The position numbers and the translations under genes were made by a program. From Calcarisporiella thermophila CBS 279.70 (taxonomy: Eukaryota; Fungi; Calcarisporiellomycota), in the NCBI RefSeq assembly GCF_041956535.1, contig NW_027192198.1:779311-843310 (forward strand): DNA of 64,000 bases, written 5' to 3'. How positions within the stretch are numbered: the first letter of the stretch is position 1; the number at the start of each line of letters is the position of its first letter. Shown here piece after piece: positions 350 to 13,372 of the stretch. Under the pieces are notes generated by a model. That model was not told where the DNA came from, searched no databases, and saw nothing but the letters and a program-made list of their open reading frames with translations.

Positions 350-1600
350 CTAAGGAAGCGAACCACAGCATAGCATTGCTAGAGCTGCAATAGCCTCCTT
401 TTCGTTCTTACCGTAGGAAGGCGGATGAGCCTCAGGTAGCCAAGGCCCTGCCTGATACGGCAATGGGCTATGGGGAGGACTATGCGGGGAAGACGAGAGT
501 CCAGGCGAAGTCTTGCTCGAGAATTCTTCATCCGTGTCCGGTGCCTGTTTCGTAGAGCGATACGCAGAGAGAGGTGGTGTTCGCAAAGCGAAACTCTCGC
601 CCAGCACCGGCAATGATCCAGAAACACCACTTTGTCGAGGAATTGGACGGCACAAGTAGGGAGGGCCTGCGATCGAATGCCGACGGAACTTGGCAGCTAC
701 GAGCTGTGGGCCTAGTTCGCGCCAATTCTCTTCCTCCGTTGCAGAAGAAGAGTCGCTCCAATTGTTTTCGTCCTCATCCTCCTCCAAATCCTCGTCCACG
801 ACCACCCCCCTTGCTCCCCTAATTCCTCCGCCATTCAAAAGGGCCGTATCCGATTGTCGTCTGCCACTTCCGGTGATAGTAAGTCCCCACCGACCCCTGC
901 CCATCCGCTGGAAATAGGAGCTAGTGCGTAGGACCGTGGCTACATCCTGTTCCCAGTCGGGTGGCGCCGTACGATAAATCGGATAATTCTCCTGAATCCA
1001 GCTGATAACCTCACGCATCGTTTTCTGTTTCTGTACTGTCTGGAACATATTGACTAGTAACACAGTCCATGCGCTGGAAGGCATTCTGTAGCTCAGGTCT
1101 CCCTTTACCGCTCCTCCTGTATCGTCATCGACAATCATTTCTACGTCATTATCTCCCGCATTTGACGCATCAACCCCGTCGCCATTCCCATCATCGTCCA
1201 CTATTTCGACCTCTTCATCGTCTTCTTCAGGCTCTACATCTTCTTCCAAATGAAAGAGTGTCTGCTCCTCCTCCTCCTCCTCATACATGGGCTTAGGCAC
1301 ATAAGTCCAGGCAGCCCGGCCCACACTCAAGAAGCATGAGTTATTGCGAAGCACTTGGCGCAGTGCTGAGCGAAGAAGATCAGGGCGCTCTCGCAAGTGG
1401 GGATGCGTGGTGAGGACGTATCGGAGAAGCTCACTCTCCTTGTGCACTGTATGATGAGGGTCACGAGTGAAAGCCTGTGTTAGTATGACGAACAGATTCT
1501 CATGAATGCTAGGTTGATGGCCAGTGGGAGAAGGATTGCGACGGATTGGTCTTGGCTTGAGAGCGGGGGGTTTTAAAAGACGAACTTTGGAAACAGTCAT
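350..1600 (-). CDS. Winged-helix/forkhead-like nuclear protein (GDS1-like), intronless, 416 aa
   Basis: Long ORF with two forkhead-like segments (e.g. TMREVISWIQENYPIYRTAPPDWEQDVATVL...YFQR...GRWGL), an acidic linker, a TEEENWRELGP motif and C-terminal EAIAALAML. The last two recall fungal GDS1-type proteins (from memory). U-rich 3' flank. Confidence 0.7.
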   Translation of the reverse strand: MTVSKVRLLKPPALKPRPIRRNPSPTGHQPSIHENLFVILTQAFTRDPHHTVHKESELLRYVLTTHPHLRERPDLLRSALRQVLRNNSCFLSVGRAAWTYVPKPMYEEEEEEQTLFHLEEDVEPEEDDEEVEIVDDDGNGDGVDASNAGDNDVEMIVDDDTGGAVKGDLSYRMPSSAWTVLLVNMFQTVQKQKTMREVISWIQENYPIYRTAPPDWEQDVATVLRTSSYFQRMGRGRWGLTITGSGRRQSDTALLNGGGIRGARGVVVDEDLEEDEDENNWSDSSSATEEENWRELGPQLVAAKFRRHSIAGPPYLCRPIPRQSGVSGSLPVLGESFALRTPPLSAYRSTKQAPDTDEEFSSKTSPGLSSSPHSPPHSPLPYQAGPWLPEAHPPSYGKNEKEAIAALAMLCCGSLP

Positions 1601-3314
1601 CGGAGGGGCAAAAATAGGAAGGCGGTTAGTTCTTAAAGAATAGAGTAATGCTGAAGAAAGGAAAAGGGTAGATAATTTAAGTTAGAGAGCAATAAGAGAG
1701 AGAATAGAATAAATAACAAATAGAAAAATGTAGAAAAAGAGTTCCTGGCTTGTGAGAAGAAAAAAGAGATTTTTGAGACCGGCAAGCGAAACTCTTGAGA
1801 ACGTGGTTGAGGCAGTGAGAGAGGAGCAAAGAGGTTTATCACGAGGTGCCCGAATGCCTCAAGTTCCACGAAGCCCACTTGATGCAAAATTACAAATATC
1901 CCACGAGTATCCCCCTAGTTTTTTTGCGGATGAGTAATTAAGGAAAATCTTTTGCTATAATGACCTATGATGCCATAATTCATGGTTGGAGAGGATTACG
2001 CCACCACTAACCTGGTGTTTTACTCCAGTGGATGCGATAGAATCCTCTGGGCATCTTCTCGTGGGCATTTTCTACCAAAACAACCATGGGGACGATATAA
2101 CCCCCTCAATTGGCCTACGCCCAAGCAAATTCTTGGCAGCGCACTGGTCTATTTGAGATTTTGGTTGCATTCATTCTCTAACACTTTAGAGGATTTGGCA
2201 AAAATTCACATCAATCTTGTTTTTAACTTTGAAAGAATCAAGCAGTCATCGCACAATAATAGAAGAGTTTAAAGCGTTTAGCAGATTCATTCTCCTTTTA
2301 AAATTTCAATCATCGGCACTGGATTTCGGTATAACTATGTTGCAAATTCTATTCGCATCGGGAGAATATAATGCATTACAATGATGATGAGTAAAACATC
2401 TTGTACTATCTTGAAACTCTTTGGATGAAACTAGTTAGCATAACCCCAGTAACCACGATCGAACAAAGTTGAATGCTCCAAATTTCCCAACACTAACTTT
2501 ATACTTTTGGAATGTTTCGCGCTTTGCATCCTCTCTTTCACATAAGAAATATAGCCTTCTTTTGCTATGACTTTTTCAGTCGGGGATTATCATTGGACAA
2601 TCCTAGCCCTTTTTTTATCGATTATATGAAATAACCATTTATACTCTGGAATATTCTCTACCCATAACTAGGTCCATATCGTCCTTGAATGGCGTGATAT
2701 TGACGTCTTGAGATAAAGTATCCCCAGTTGAAGTCTGGCGAAATTCGATTGAGATGGCCTTTTTTTAGAAAAAGATATCCATGACCAATTTTTGTCGGGA
2801 ACACAAGATTTGAAGGACAGGGGACCACTTGAGAGGCAACTCGGGCAATAAGTCGCTGACATCATGTTCGGGCGTCTCATTTGATATCTGAACAATGGTC
2901 CATTTACTAATCGATAGCTTCTTCGTTTTTATTCTGAAGTTTTAAAGTCAAATTCGTAGTTTGTCCGATTCGATTTTGGGCGGTACACATTCGGATCATA
3001 GCCAAAATGGTGCACAAATACTTTGAGTGAATATACCGTGTCATTCTAACTACTATGTTATAGTTTGAGAAAGTTAAAAAAGTGAAATGGATAAAAAAAA
3101 GTTTAGGAAAAATAATAATAAACAATAAGAAGATAGAAGATAACTCATTTTTTAAGGCCCGAATTCCCAGCGAAAGATTTCAAATAAACAAAGAAATAAA
3201 GAAGGAAGAATAAGAGAGAATAAATGATCAGAAATGCAATTTATCTCGTCAACGAGAATAAAGAAGAGTATATATAATCCGGAAATTATGATTGAAAGAA
3301 GAGAGGGGGATTGC

Positions 3315-6300
3315 TTAGTACTCCTCTTCCTCGCCCTCCGTTCCCGTCCACATCTCTTCTTCTTCATCCTCGTCCCCATCCCAATCCACTACCGCGTCGT
3401 CCAACTCCTCATCCGAGAGTGCATGATGATGGTGGTGATGGTGGTGATGGTGATGGAAAGGCGCAATCACAATATCCATCTCGGCTCCCTCGTCACCCGT
3501 ACCCTCCTCCTCGCTGACGTCGCTCATATCGCTGTCGGGAGTTCCCTCTGTGTATTCTTCGTAGATCTCCTCATCCTCGCTGGTGTCTTCCTCCCCTTCT
3601 TCGGCCGACTCGATTCCTCCACCTGCAATCATTCCAAGGGACGAATTCCGGTATAAATCGGGTGCCTCTTCGCCCTCCTCCTCCTCTTCCTCAACTTCTT
3701 CTTCATCCTCAGTATTTTCATAGAACTCCTCCTCATCGTCCTCATCCTCATCCTCCTCGTCTGCAAGGATAGCACGTCTCCTTCGTCTTCTCCTCGCCTT
3801 ACCCTCATCAGATCTACTCATCTTAATGGCTATACGTGTGAGCTGCTCTAGTGGTCTCAAAATCGTGCTGATCACGTTTTTGGCTGCAGGGTAATTGAAA
3901 TCCACCTCACCAAGCGCGCTGGTCAGCAGACCCACAAAGTTCTTCTCAAGCATGAGCTTTGCGGCCGAGCTGGGGGCGTCGGCAGGCTTACCTGCGGACG
4001 ATTGGGGAGGGGGGCGCGTCGTAAGTATACGGTAACACACGTCGGATAGGGCCATCAATTTTCCGTATTTGATTTCCATCAAGCTAGGTGCGTGCATGGT
4101 GTCCTTGAGGGAGCGTGCAATCCCGTCAAGCACGAAACGACGTACATGCTGCAACTCCGAAGGTGGCACCTCTCCTGGGCGCAGTTCTTTCGACTTCGTA
4201 TTCTCATCGGATTCCAGATCGGGCCCGTCGCTGCACAATGCCACCAATGTGTTTGTAGCCCAATTCGAGGGTGTATAGCGGTTTCGCCGTGGCTCGTCTG
4301 ACAAGTCCACTCCTTCATACGGGAGAAGATCATTGAGCAGATAATTTAGGAAGACAGTACGCGGTTTCCACGTAGAAGTGTCCTCGCCCCGCCGACTAAA
4401 GTTCATCAAATTGATCTTACACACGGGATAGGATGAAAGTAGTTCGGTGAGGCATTGGAGCAAGAAGCAAGTATACATGAATTGCCCCTCCCGAGCTTTG
4501 GACGCAGCATCTGCTCCCTTGTCATCCTTTTCGTCAGGTTTTGAACCGGCTGCCCCCGTTTCTCCTACGGCAGGGACGGAGGCCGATGACTCGGCCATTG
4601 CCGTGTCTTGAAGTGAGGTGCTTGGCTTCGAAGGCGTGGCAAATATCGAATCGCTGCTCGGAGGTGCTGCATCTTTCTTCTTTGCACGGTGGTTGAGAAG
4701 CTCATCAATGAGGAAATTGATCACGACCGCAGAGATCCCCTCTTGTGGCTTGGGTGTCTCGAAAGGCTGCGGTTGCAAAAACATGGAGGTCTCAGGTGCG
4801 ACAGTCGCTTCGGCCTTTGACGAAGACTCGCCTTCCTCCTTATCTTTTTTGTCTTGCTCTTCGGCTTCCATCGACTCTCCCTCAAGCGGTTTCTCCTCGC
4901 CTTTTTCCTCCTCGAGGCTTGCGTCATCCGCCCACCGCGAATTGCTCTTCAACGTGATCTGCTGGCTTCGCATCATCATATCGTTGGCCGGTAGTTTGCA
5001 CAGGTCTCGTGTGACGCGTAGGAAAGTCTCAGGGTCACGTAGTGCAATGTGGCTATTATTGCGTAAGAAAGTGGTGACATCGACCACACGAGGACGCGGA
5101 GGAGCGAACCAGGTATTCACTTCGCGTTCCATTGTGTTCTGTAGCACCTGGGGGTCATCGACTGCATGCCGTAGAATGAGAATAATGAACGGCTCCTGCC
5201 CCACAAATCCTTCAGCGCCTGATCGAGGCAAAGAAAACAGTAGTGGAAGTCCGCCTGATTGAACAAATTCTGCGGCAAAACGGTGCTGCCGGGTCAGTCG
5301 CACGAGCACTCGGAGCAGAGCAAGCATAAAATCTTTAGGCGGTTGCGGTAGTCGTAGAAGCTCAATGCAATGCTTTAGTAGCTTCAATCTGACCTCATCC
5401 GAGACCTTTGCGCGTGCCTCACGCTCCCGCTCCTCCGGTTTTTCGACCCGTTTGATATCTGCATCCTCGGTGTGCTCAACTTCAATGGCACGTGGCTCAT
5501 CTGCCATCGACAAAAATACTTCAACAACGAGAAGTAATGGCGTGATCCATTCAGCAACCGCATCACCGCCTGTCGCAAACTGCAATTCTATTAGGTCGAT
5601 AAGTGGCGGGAGAAGATTTTCCTTAACGGTGAGGACCTCCTCTTGGAATTTGCTGCCATTAAGGATCAGCGCGAGTAATCGGAATCGCGAATGGAGTTTG
5701 TGCTGCAATTTCTTCCACTGTTCTTCGTCTATTGATCTATCCCTCGGCTCAACTACGTCTGAAATTAAGAGCTTGATTGTGGGTATCGTATTATCTTTGC
5801 ACAGAATGGTGAAGAGATCCGTGATTTCAAAAATCGCCTGCTCAGACACATCCAGAAGCTCAAGTGCACGGCTACCAATCTCTTGCTTGACTGCTTCCCG
5901 CATCTCGTGATAGCTCTTCTCGATCTCCTTCGCTTTACCCTTGTCTTTTTCAGGTGCAGGCGCCTTCGCGTCAGATTCAGATGGCTGATTTGAAGAGGGA
6001 GTGCCCATGGAGAGCTCTAAAGCTTCACGCAGGAATCTGGCTTCTTCATTGTCACTTGAATCGGTGAGCTCCGTCATCGGTGCATCACCCCCAATCTCCA
6101 CTGGCATGCTAGAAGACTCCGGGTTCCGTTCACTAGATGGTCCTCCAGCCGAAGCTTCCGCATTCTCCGGATCATCCTCGGCATGATCTTCGGTTTCTCC
6201 GCCTTCGTTGTCCCTACCGTTTGTATCTTGCTCTCCTTCTCCGCCTCCCTCCCCAGTAGTAGCTCTATTGCCGGGTGTATCTGAGTTGGTATTTCGGCGC

Positions 6301-9300
6301 TCACCACTGGACTCGTCGAAAGCAGCGGCAGCGACCATATCCGGATGAGATAGAAGATATTCGGCGGCGCGCGCGACTGAATTGCCGCAGCGCATTAGTG
6401 CAGTCTCTGCTGCACCCGTAGGGAACCCCATATCTGTCAGTTGGCGGATGCTCGACTCTGGCGGAGGAGGTGGGGGTGGCGGATGCCATCCGAAAAGTGT
6501 TGGAGCAGAATTACCAAAACTACTGGAGCTTTCTGCAGTTTGATTGATTTCTCCCTCCCCCTTAAGGATCTGCACAAGTATTTGTGCCAAAATGCGATGT
6601 ATTGATGGTGTACTCTTGGGCAAGTATTCGCTGTTCCATATTTCGCGAACCACTGGTAACACCTTGGCACGCATCATGACAAGATGCTCGTAGGGATCAA
6701 AACTATCCGCCGCACGATCCTTGTCGCGCGAAATCAATGTATTCGTGCTGGGGGAGTCGTGTAGAAGTTTGTGGGAGATGACAATATGTAAAAGATGCAA
6801 CGAGACACCGATTGCCTTGTGAAGATGATCAAGTGTTGTTTTGACTTCGTCACTCTGGTCCGCCTGGGAACTAAGCTCAATTGCCCGCTGCCAAAGTATG
6901 CGGATAAGATCAAACATGGACTCGAAGCCCCCTGCTCTATCGAAAGCGAGCACTACTATTGTTTGCAGCGTCATATGACTGCGTTCATCCACGAACATTA
7001 AACATATTAGCCCCAGCATAGCACCAAGATATCTGTAGCGTTTAGGCTCTGGTTCGGTATCTATTGCAGATGCATTACAGTTGATTAATACATTAGAAGC
7101 GTAGATAAAGAGCATTGATCCAGAACTAACCTATCCGCGGCCACAGGATACTGTCTTTCATGACCTTTGCCACAATATCTGCAACCTTGGATGCTTGTTT
7201 TTTCTGTTGCGGCTCCGCCCCTCTGCGCGTCACCAGCATCCTGCAAACTCCTATTTATGAACGGGAAAGATGTTAAATTTAGGGGGATGCCTCGTTAACA
7301 AATCCTCTCTTACCTTGGAACACGATCTGCAGACAAGTGGAGAGGTGCAGTGTCATATATTTCAAATATAATGCGTTTTTATATTTCGGGTCATTCTTCG
7401 ATACCGGCAGCTCTGCCTCGCCCTCTTTAGACTCTTCACCCTCGGCCTGCTTGTTACTCGGGTCTGTTGTCTTCGGACTCAGAGGTAAATTTTCAGGTGC
7501 AAATGGGTCGCTGAGCGCAAACGCTGGCGTTGTCAAATCTTTCGCATCCTTGTTAGGACGATCCTTGAACCAAGACGAAGGCACCACATCCTTATAGTGG
7601 ATACACTCTCGCACGCAAGCTCGGTGAAGCTGTCCCAACAGAGCAATAACCTCTTCGCCCTGCGGACCTGCCAGCGATTGTACGACGGTGGCAGCGCTCT
7701 TGCTATGGGAGAAAATCGGTGGGCAATAGAGATCCGCGAGTAGGCCGATATGCGCCATCACAATAAGTAGACTTCGGAAAGTGTTATTTGCGTCCTCGAT
7801 TTTGGTCGTTTCCGATTCCTCCAGGACCAAGTACGTTGCAAGCAACGAGCCGGGCTCGTTATATTCAAGGAATCGCTTCGTGTTTTCAAGCGATTCGTGC
7901 AGCCCCTTTATTATCGCGTTCGCAACCACGGATGGATTCACTTCACTTGCAATATTGAACACGTGAGAGAGCAAGTAATGAGCATTGGTGGTGGCAAAAT
8001 CATAGGGAAGCGAGGGAAGCAATAAGATCTGAAGGAGCTGCTCTAGCCCATCAAGCTTGATGAATTCCCGACAGTTGGTGCTGTTCTGGAAGAGACTCTC
8101 AAGAAACTTAAGGGATATAAATGCGTGAGCAAATGTCGCTGGTGCTAATCAAATTTCATCACAGAAAAATTACCTTTGAGAGAACTTCGATGAATTGTAA
8201 AATCAAACTCTCTGGTTTCTCCTCTGGCTTGGCATCCTCTGACTCCCCTGCAGAACCTGCTGCGGCTACTCGTGAAGGCTGCTCTGAGGTCGTCATCGGA
8301 ATATCCGTCACTGTTTCATTTGCGGGCTTAACATGCAACCGATAGCCTGTGTCCTCTTGCTTTGCCTGCTCGCTCTGCCCGAAATCAATTATTCGCTTTA
8401 TTATTTCTAAAGCCGCATTTAGCACATCAATCCGTAAACTCGGTTGATGTCGAATAAGCTCCTCGATGGAGCTACCAAGCAATGAGGCGTTGTTGCCCTC
8501 CATAAGCGAGCGCAAGTGATCCTTTGATATGAGGATGCTGAAGAAATTGGGAATGGGGTTGGCCTCTTTAAACATTTCCAAGCCTTGGCTATTAAGGCAA
8601 ATGGCACCAAATGCATTGGGTATCGCGTTGATGACCTAAAACATGAAAATGCATGATAAAAATTAGAGCTACTTGAGAAAAAACAACAGGTCCATTGTTT
8701 AAGGCATACATCGCTGGAGACTAAGATCTCTGCATTAACCGTTTTTAGAAAGGTTTGTGGTAACTGTGCTTCCTGAAGCATCGTAAGCGATGTAGGCTCG
8801 TTGTGGATGATCGTTGCCAGGATATTAATCGCTACGAAGAGGAAAATTAACCGGATGCAATTAATGAGTGTCCAACATTCATCAAGAAAAGGCATTTCAT
8901 TTCGAACCTTGGGCAAAAACACTACTCCCAAAGGGTTTAGGATGAGCAATTATAAGCTTCAAGGATTGCGGTAGACTGGAGTCAATAACATTTCGCAGCC
9001 CATCCGCAGTACCAGTTGTAACCATCATGTGCAAGATAAACTTTAACATTCCTTTTAACAGGCTAATGCGTTCGTGCGGCACCGAGCTATCATCTGAAGT
9101 TTCTGACGGAATTGTTCGCTCGGCAATTGCGCCAGCTGGGGCGTCTAATTGCACATCTTGCATTGGCTCGCCTTCCGTGTTAATAAATTGAGTGCAGAAT
9201 TCAACTTCCTCTTTGACACGCCCAATCAGAATACTGAGCCCGTTGGCATTGATAAATACGCTGAAAGAGTTGGTAAAACCATACACGATGCTATCTAGCA

Positions 9301-11138
9301 TGCTCACAGCCTTGGTGATCACCTAGAATTTTGAAAAATTAACGCGCGAAGTTAGACTTAATGGTTGTCAGAATATACCTTTGCATGCGAAGAATTTTTG
9401 TTTTGCAGAAGCTGTAATAATGTCGTGATAATTCCAGCAGAAATCAACATGGTCCCACCGCTCTGTGTGCTTACTATATAGGTCAGCAGGAAGAAAAAGG
9501 CATCCACGTACTCTTGAGGGTATAGATCTGAGAAAAAGTGATCACTAAATTTGCAAGTTAAATTTGGTGATGAATGTTTCGAACTCACTTGTATTATTTT
9601 CAAGATTTGTAACCAATTTTCGGAAACCAGAAAGAAGAATGCCGTGGTTAGCGGATGCTTGGAGGGCACTCAACACCTCGTTCAACTTCGACCGATAGCG
9701 TGCTAGAGCTTCTAGTGCATAGAGTGTAGCAATTTGAATAGGCTAATTGGAGAAAAGGGGCAAGGAAAAAGGTATGCCATTATTCGTCCGTAATAATAAG
9801 AAAGTTCATGAAATCATTTATGTTTTACCATAAAGACGTGTTTTTCCGGGTGAATTAAATCTGCGAGTTCCGTCACAAGCTCAGGCTCGTAGAGAAATAA
9901 TTTAGCGTTTGCTTCATTTTCTGGGTACATATGGACTACTTTAGGGGTTAGGGTTTGGCGGTGTAGGACTGCATAAAATCAGCAAAATAACACTTGCCTG
10001 CTATTGCGATGGCCAGTATACGAATGGTTAGGAGGCGTAGTCGTGTTTTCGGGTCTGAGACACCAAGTGAAAGTCGAACTCGATGCAACAAACCAAAGTG
10101 AAATTCCTCCGGAACTGAATACTGTTCAACAATCTGGTCGAATAGATTTCGTTCAGAAGTGCAATGTTGACGGGGATTGATGATGGTAATGGTCGTCATT
10201 CCCTCCTTAACTTCACTGCTGCTTCCGGCCGCACCACCAGATGATGCGCCGCTTGTCAAAGATTCTCGCCGATGAATGGGCGTAGGTGTCTCTGGCACCG
10301 CTCTGTTCTCCGCTTCTGCTGAGACGTTCTCATCTGATCCCTTGTGCTGCTTTACAAACCGGTAGAAGGAGTAGTGGAAGTTGTTCAGGTCCATAGGTAT
10401 TTTTGCGTCAGGTGTGCTCAACAAGTATAAATTTGTTGATTCATCCTCTGTCGACCAGGCAGAGGCAAGATCCATAATACGCTCGTTCTGAATTACAAAA
10501 TTTGCTCGCAATGAACGTTGTTGACTTAGGCGTTGTGCGGGACGTAGCAATAGCCATAATGTGGTTTCGAGTACTTCGTGGTCAAATGTATTGAGGATAT
10601 CATTAAGATGCTATTAGAATAGTAACTAGACTCAATAATAGCTCGAAGGCAAGTGGTTAAACCAAAAGAATCACCTCATAAGAATTATACAGATTTCGAT
10701 TTGTACAATTCTCCAACAGCAGTTTTGTAAATCGCAAGATCGCTAACAATGTCTGTCGCTCGTTGTCTGCAAAAGGCTCCTTTTGTACGTGCTTCTTCAA
10801 CTCATATCGTTCACACAGCTTCTCTAGAATTGTGTCGAATCGATTTAGCACGCTTATCCAAAGGAAAAGGTCCCCACGCGGAAATGGCCAGGCATCAAAA
10901 GATGCCAAGATCTTAGAGATTTCCGATTCAGGCTGTTCATTTAATTCTTGAATAAGCTTTTTCATAGCCGGCGGCTACACGAAAAAAAGGTAAAAATTAG
11001 ATAATTGAAGGTGAGATCGGGGAAAGTTTGAGAAAGAAATCCCCCGACTTTCTACCCTTCCCCATATACAGTTCCTATTGATAAGGAATAACTTACAGGT
11101 GACGCCAGTTTCTTTGGTGGAGACTTTTTGATCTTCAT
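3315..11138 (-). CDS. TOM1: Tom1/HUWE1 E3 ligase, N-terminal part only (ARM solenoid DUF908/DUF913 + UBA + UIM-like; no HECT), ~2340 aa
   Basis: 12 exons: 11097-11138, 10675-10974, 9998-10610, 9829-9935, 9589-9742, 9379-9527, 8908-9322, 8710-8831, 8174-8635, 7314-8106, 7131-7250, 3315-7060. They sum to 7023 nt in frame. Motifs: WPFPRGDLFLWISVLNRFD, LLENCTNRNLYNSYEHL, IIHNEPTSL, AIPNAFGAICLN, UBA (LTDMGF...AAEYLLSHP), PDLYRNSSLGM. Confidence 0.92.
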
Positions 11139-12352: not shown

Positions 12353-13372
12353 TCAGAGCTTCGCGCGATCACTGCGACTAAGCGTTGCGGTAATCAGACC
12401 TAGTAGGGTTCAGCCCCATTTAATATTTTCACATATGTCAATGATATTCGATATTTCTTACCAGATGGATCGGATAGCGGTTGATAAACAGTTGCACTGG
12501 CGCCTTCGTTCTCCATACCAAAAGGCTTGAGGTTTACAGGGAAATAGTGCACATTAGGCATTGCGAAGTAGATGCGTGCCACATCCTTACAAGAGTCGAG
12601 GAAACGATGCGCGGTGTTGTAGAGAGTGGCCTGCACACTTGGGCTCGGCTCCACAAAGGCTTCCAAAGTCAAGCGTCTAACTTCCTGTCTTGCCAGCTCG
12701 AAATTGTATTCTTTTGGATGGTGGGTGGTCGGATATTCCCATTTCGATTCCACCACGGTCGAGAAGACGCGGTCTTCCGCCTCTGGCAGGGTCGTATACT
12801 TGTCGCGAACAAAGTTGGTAAAGGATGAACCCGTCGATTTAAGTACGCATAGATCCTTCAGCCCGCTACGAATAGTATAACCGCCGTTACGCTTGTAGGT
12901 GACTTGCGTGGTATCAACGTCGCTCTCCTTGCTAAAGGCATGCGGATGGATCTCACCATGAACGAGGAGTCGATTCCAGCGGTGCTGAGTGATATCAATA
13001 TGGCACTGGTGAATGTGCGAGTAAGTGCTCACAAAATGATGAGCTAAATCACAAGCGAAATGCTCGAACGGTTGGACACTGGCCGCCTCTTTTGCCTTGA
13101 TATATACGGTATTCTTCATTGAGTCTAGTGAAAAAAAAATATGGAGTTTATGGAGCTTAAACTGGACATTGACTCTAGTGTTCGTTGTGTTGCAGCTTAC
13201 CAGTCGCGACCACAATCGAATTGTCCGCCTTGGTGTAAGAGGTGGCAATATCACCTTCAAGCATAACTCGAACAGTTAGCTCAGTCACCTCATGCCACTT
13301 TCCTTTGCGAACTACTTTCAGGAGTCGGACGCGGTCCTTTCCATAGACAGCGGTTTCTAATGCGTAGGTCAT
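12353..13372 (-). CDS. UOX: Uricase (urate oxidase), peroxisomal (C-terminal AKL)
   Basis: YGKDRVRLLKV, DNSIVVATDSMKNTVY, LCVLKSTGSSF, SPSVQATLY, MPNVHYF, PSGLITATL...AKL*; three exons. Confidence 0.95.

Follow-up and report, generated by a model that had tools for sequence, protein, structure and literature searches.

Can a Tom1/HUWE1 ubiquitin ligase be made of two separately encoded chains? The question is raised by Tom1-N, a gene of the fungus Calcarisporiella thermophila CBS 279.70 that ends before the catalytic HECT domain. The gene lies on scaffold C8, within a stretch of 64,000 nucleotides (nt) of the forward strand (NW_027192198.1:779,311-843,310), called the window here. Tom1/HUWE1 proteins have the domain order ARLD1-3, acidic domain, Tower, UBMs, ARLD4 and HECT, and the Tom1/Ptr1/HUWE1/UPL1 family carries these domains on one polypeptide. 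In the C. thermophila assembly they are found at two loci, the N-terminal part in the window and the C-terminal part in a second gene, Tom1-C, on scaffold C7. This is the pattern of gene fission, in which a single-gene ancestor gives two complementary genes. Probably, a fission by DNA translocation yielded a non-covalent heterodimeric ring ligase, with the assembly of the two halves predicted from their homologues. Spliced and concatenated Tom1 models were built computationally and compared with database sequences.

The N-terminal half ends inside the acidic domain

Tom1-N and its features occupy the following positions of the window.

3315-11138, minus strand: Tom1-N gene (VTP21DRAFT_11160), 12 exons, 2340 amino acids (aa), with ARLD1-3 and the first part of the acidic domain
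11138-11097, 10974-10675, 10610-9998, 9935-9829, 9742-9589, 9527-9379, minus strand: exons 1-6
9322-8908, 8831-8710, 8635-8174, 8106-7314, 7250-7131, 7060-3315, minus strand: exons 7-12
9936-9997, minus strand: GC-AG intron 3, donor AG/GCAAGT, at a conserved position and with two tandem acceptors 3 nt apart
9611-10761, minus strand: DUF908 region, aa 86-398, holding the ring-closure motif with a His that matches human H356
7999-9316, minus strand: DUF913 region, aa 458-824, holding L648, the equivalent of yeast L615 (structural-ubiquitin site)
6339-6461, minus strand: UBA domain, aa 1293-1333
3663-3800, minus strand: Arg7 run and, after it, an additional acidic block, directly past ARLD3, lineage-specific against 56 intact relatives
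3630-3662, minus strand: PDLYRNSSLGM, a conserved motif early in the acidic domain, matching about 1895-1905 of yeast Tom1
3318-3629, minus strand: predicted free acidic C-terminal tail, with His11 at 3455-3423 and a conserved MW motif 10 residues before the stop
3318-3329, minus strand: 12-nt word GAAGAGGAGTAC (EEEY), with a second in-frame occurrence in Tom1-C exon 1 (scaffold C7)
3315-3317, minus strand: stop TAA at the proposed fission point, the frame ending GTEGEEEEY-TAA

The 12 exons splice into a single open frame whose sole stop is terminal. The deposited protein has 2340 aa; our model of 2341 aa differs from it only in the acceptor of intron 3 (GC-AG), which it places 3 nt further upstream. 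All 11 introns occupy positions common to the intact Tom1 genes of Umbelopsis and Rhizophagus. In the domain search, the protein contains DUF908 (E-value 7e-78), DUF913 (E-value 1e-101) and UBA, and UBM and HECT are absent. A sequence-only reading of the window had described an uninterrupted frame of ~2340 aa in 12 exons, with a UBA and a UIM-like helix, that ends about 110 residues past the PDLYRNSSLGM motif and is followed by U-rich noncoding DNA and, ~1.7 kb on, by another gene on the same strand. The frame and the UBA stand, the end lies 114 aa from the D of the motif, and the next gene, a forkhead gene, starts at 1600. The UIM-like helix can be seen by eye but gives no Pfam match.

Because the PDLYR motif aligns to this part of yeast Tom1, the cut is placed inside the acidic domain, residues 1873-2131, at a site equivalent to about residue 2000-2030. 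In yeast this domain is disordered and binds histones, its deletion leaves the fold unchanged, and mainly its left half is needed in vivo (10.1101/2024.07.08.601072). An AlphaFold model of the matching segment of an intact Fennellomyces orthologue has a predicted local distance difference test (pLDDT) score below 50 over nearly all of the ~390 residues around the site. The block just past ARLD3 in Tom1-N has 28 acidic residues (D/E), compared with a maximum of 22 in the 56 intact relatives, and a run of seven basic residues (K/R), compared with a maximum of three. The Arg7 run itself (window 3774-3800) is absent from the 56 relatives; speculatively, it could be a nuclear import signal or a clasp for the acidic head of the partner.

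The C-terminal half lies on a second scaffold

C7:98173-93048 (L026:6174-1049 in the numbering of the C7 stretch L026), minus strand: Tom1-C gene (VTP21DRAFT_10304), own ATG, 5 exons, 1605 aa

Our Tom1-C model is identical to the deposited 1605-aa protein. It contains the Tower, three UBMs, ARLD4 and a complete HECT with the catalytic Cys. In a search of the whole assembly, DUF908 and DUF913 occur in this window only and the triple UBM with HECT at one locus, on C7. The intact Rhizophagus orthologue maps with residues 1111-2261 to C8 and with residues 2533-3902 to C7, and no full-length Tom1 copy was found in the assembly. The expectation of a separate locus with its own ATG for the UBM/HECT half, and of no full-length paralogue, is thereby confirmed. 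The C-half sequence is matched neither in the window nor in the 10 kb left of it. A catalytically dead lone scaffold, another suggestion of the sequence-only reading, no longer has grounds, since an intact partner is present. Eight other HECT loci are present in the genome (two on C10 and one each on C4, C17, C1, C14, C5 and C16), none of them (0/8) with DUF908 or DUF913.

The start of Tom1-C has a pyrimidine-rich 5' flank, and an SMN gene lies ~740 nt upstream on the same strand. This SMN gene (L026:6915-8123 on C7) has matches to the Gemin2-binding region and the YG-box and stands head to head with a beta-adaptin gene. A 51-nt hairpin with 25-nt arms that are 84% complementary (L026:6489-6539), ~315 nt upstream of the Tom1-C ATG, might be prone to breakage or have a regulatory role. 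The first intron of Tom1-C (L026:5939-6039) is of the GC-AG type with an unusual GCAATG donor; if it is left unspliced, the frame that begins in exon 1 closes at 56 codons, with another ATG directly behind the acceptor. The GC-AG introns in the deposited models of both genes hint at transcript support.

On the other side of the break, the region downstream of Tom1-N contains the following.

1601-3314, minus strand: 3' flank and intergenic DNA of 1714 nt, T-rich at first, noncoding
350-1600, minus strand: forkhead-domain gene, apparently intronless, a downstream neighbour and not part of the ligase

In the 250 nt 3' of the Tom1-N stop, T makes up 50% and G 8%. Open stretches within 1601-3314 reach 97 codons at most, and no C-half remnant, gap or repeat common with C7 is present there. 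Upstream of Tom1-N, a uricase gene lies at window 12400-13260 on the minus strand.

Conservation of both halves

Trees of the N part, of the non-HECT C part and of HECT all place the C. thermophila sequences among the Mucoromycota orthologues, with weakly supported deep nodes. Root-to-tip distance is 1.75 for the N part, compared with 1.88-2.29 in relatives, and 1.22 for the C part, compared with 1.25-1.56. In the larger blocks of both halves, 87-100% of conserved columns are kept. Retention is slightly lower in N301-800 (78/87) and C610-820 (44/50), and both of these blocks include closure surfaces. Tom1-C keeps the catalytic Cys of HECT, and Tom1-N keeps both the His equivalent to human H356 and the Leu equivalent to yeast L615. 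In yeast, L615 keeps a structural ubiquitin in place between ARLD1 and HECT (10.1101/2024.11.25.625210). By analogy, the known roles of the H356 and L615 equivalents need a C-half nearby. No frameshifts, internal stops or relaxed evolution were found in either half, and a pseudogene, already doubted from the letters alone, is rejected on the open frames, the conserved columns and the lack of branch lengthening. Because of this conservation, both halves appear to have been kept under selection.

The acidic linker and the junction

The two halves complement each other across the linker. The distance from PDLYR to the Tower motif is 114 + 265 = 379 aa when the halves are added, compared with 357-449 in intact relatives, and their acidic residues sum to 122, compared with a mean of 124. 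In alignments to the Jimgerdemannia linker, the score is 351 for the additive arrangement and 300 for a join at EEEY. In the C-half, EEEY is preceded by an acidic run similar to the second acidic block of the linker. A linker intron recurs near the fission point in Jimgerdemannia (L034 end/L031 start), Circinella (L030:9600-9700) and Umbelopsis (L035), and the break may have started at this intron or close by.

Several observations weigh against a fission that gave a working two-chain ligase. For the first 21 residues of the C-half, homology to the linker falls short of significance (p 0.08). The last 12 coding nt of Tom1-N stand in frame in exon 1 of Tom1-C, which allows a seamless rejoin. 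Intact frames do not give the age of the break, and the collections searched hold one strain and one short-read assembly only. Protein searches and a metagenome scan found no second Calcarisporiella sequence, the scan returning only two distant Tom1 loci with 34-35% identity. The 12-nt match has a p of about 0.01 (codon shuffle, post hoc), and an extended duplication around EEEY is not significant (p 0.16). The match may have arisen by chance in Glu-rich DNA, may be left over from a staggered break or may mark where a recent exchange took place.

Because the in-frame match ends exactly at the stop, misassembly and a recent strain-specific translocation have to be weighed. In the first case, the gene would be intact in the cell and two scaffolds would be cross-joined in the low-complexity acidic linker. 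The assembly is of the 454/SOAPdenovo type (PMC11393059 supplement), other fungal assemblies or annotations also break at the linker (Jimgerdemannia, Rhizopogon, Tulasnella), and the common word ends at the stop, all of which would fit an artefact. However, two reciprocal misjoins would be required. The longest word common to both junctions is 14 nt, and usual assembly k-mer sizes exceed this. Both half-genes lie deep inside scaffolds of ~1.24 Mb with unrelated genes on either side, without N runs near either half and without a duplicate of either flank elsewhere in the assembly, whereas the other artefacts stand at contig ends or gaps or have halves 6-236 nt apart. A swap would also imply a real acidic mini-gene of 30 codons at the partner locus, and BUSCO fragmentation of the assembly is 0.9%. 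An assembly artefact is therefore unlikely.

The second case, a recent reciprocal translocation through the 12-nt microhomology that is private to the cultured strain and leaves halves that may work poorly or not at all, is also improbable. The exact in-frame match at the break fits it, as does the W-to-HPLL spacing of about 146 aa in a seamless join, compared with 144-154 in Mucorales, and a young event is compatible with the conservation. However, the new ends look like those of finished genes, with an own ATG and pyrimidine-rich 5' flank on one side and a T-rich 3' flank on the other. The C-half acidic run with its likeness to the second acidic block, the better alignment of the additive arrangement, and the Arg7 run and added acidic residues of the N-half, unseen in the 56 relatives, also argue against a recent event, and the 30-codon mini-gene would again be needed at the partner locus. 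Since yeast without Tom1 is heat-sensitive (10.1101/2024.07.08.601072), loss of Tom1 would presumably be costly in a thermophile.

A predicted two-chain ring

In the fission that we favour, an ancestral single TOM1 would have been broken by a DNA-level rearrangement in the exon coding for the disordered acidic domain. Tom1-N would have gained its stop and 3' flank and Tom1-C its own ATG behind the SMN gene, both of which are observed in the assembly. Retroposition is excluded because the introns are conserved and shared, and duplication with reciprocal decay has left no trace, with no remnant of the other half beside either gene. The two proteins would reassemble non-covalently into the usual ring. 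From the solved homologues, the bridging contacts would be those of ARLD1 with ARLD4 and HECT, of the Tower with HWA and probably of ARLD3 with ARLD4. The ARLD1-ARLD4 contact buries 860 square angstroms in HUWE1 (PMC8476073) and 1122 square angstroms in Tom1 (10.1101/2024.11.25.625210), and ring closure is required for full activity (PMC8476073, 10.1101/2024.11.25.625210). The cut lies in an unstructured insert, and therefore the folded bridging contacts should be untouched. The acidic loop would become two free tails, longer on the N-half, which carries the left part of the acidic domain, the one that matters for function. These tails would continue to capture basic orphan proteins, among them histones and ribosomal proteins, for the HECT of the partner chain.

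Alternatively, the fission is old and real and each half functions by itself: Tom1-C would be a stand-alone chain amplifier of the UBM-HECT type and Tom1-N an adaptor or scaffold, with transient binding or none. Tom1-C does have three UBMs and a complete HECT, open ring states are seen in the homologues (10.1101/2024.07.08.601072, PMC8476073), and the blocks with slightly lower column retention, N301-800 and C610-820, are in keeping with independence. We nevertheless regard this as quite improbable. The H356 and L615 equivalents are kept and their known role needs the other half nearby; in human HUWE1, closure mutants lose activity, and with the isolated HECT almost no substrate ubiquitylation is left (PMC8476073). 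Trans-splicing of two pre-mRNAs into a full-length mRNA, as first suggested, is very improbable and finds no support in the sequence: a GTACTA overlapping the stop might act as a donor, and these genes do have degenerate donors, but this donor is in phase 2 and the acceptor of the first C-half intron in phase 0, the T-rich AG sites ahead of the Tom1-C start codon run into an in-frame stop, flank complementarity is no different from shuffled controls (p 0.22), and the deposited annotation has the halves as separate genes.

Comparison with relatives and known systems

Single-chain Tom1 is found in Glomeromycota, Umbelopsis, Mortierellaceae, Mucorales, chytrids, Dikarya and plants, and 93 of the 99 newly listed Tom1 matches have at least 3150 aa. 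The same break, looked for in related genomes, does not recur, as the sister lineages are single-chain. The Mucoromycota Tom1 proteins of Umbelopsis, Rhizophagus, Mortierellaceae and Mucorales resemble the C. thermophila pair in sequence (36-46% identity over the first 1250 aa), intron positions and linker length, but theirs are single genes of about 3500-4000 aa with HECT. No synteny beyond Tom1 is seen with Circinella, Jimgerdemannia or the two metagenome loci, and the neighbour Pfams of Umbelopsis and Linnemannia also differ.

Five apparent halves in other fungi, annotated with a break in this linker or close to it, were checked and rejected as artefacts or contig-end fragments. The Jimgerdemannia halves arise where a contig ends inside a poly-T intron, and the Circinella half has its N-half directly upstream, uncalled; the annotation of Circinella minor (L030:1307-10000) omits the whole N-half of an intact TOM1. 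The Tulasnella halves are 6 nt apart with a wrong acceptor, the Rhizopogon halves are 236 nt apart with an N gap, and the Ceratobasidium half begins at a contig end. About two dozen N-half matches of 2400-2700 aa end in the acidic region with tails like intron read-through and were taken, from the tails alone, as exon-level gene calls.

The C. thermophila halves share orthology, key residues and domain order with S. cerevisiae Tom1 (9EGK, 9DNS, 9ELD) and human HUWE1 (7JQ9). In those, one chain tethers the acidic loop on either side, whereas here there are two genes and two predicted chains with free acidic tails. Fission by separation is known in fungi, for example folB-folK-folP (PMC4224340), where also one frame is broken and both parts are kept as genes. 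There, independent enzyme domains are parted; here the cut goes through a continuous solenoid ring that needs its two ends to come together for catalysis. The literature searched, which was covered incompletely, gave no account of a split Tom1/HUWE1, and a 2026 review covers single-chain structures only (PMC13196369).

HUWE1/Tom1 is a central quality-control ligase, and recent structural papers state as open the roles of ring opening and of the structurally unresolved acidic domain (10.1101/2024.07.08.601072, PMC13196369, PMC8476073). On balance we lean towards a natural two-subunit Tom1/HUWE1 with two free substrate-capturing tails, whose output could be tuned by subunit ratio or localisation. 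If this is true, the fission is an unusual one, through a ring whose ends must meet and not between independent enzymes, and chain continuity across the acidic domain would be dispensable. It would provide half-size thermophile constructs for structure work and point to a tolerated position at which yeast TOM1 could be cut likewise, so that substrate capture and catalysis could be mixed and matched.

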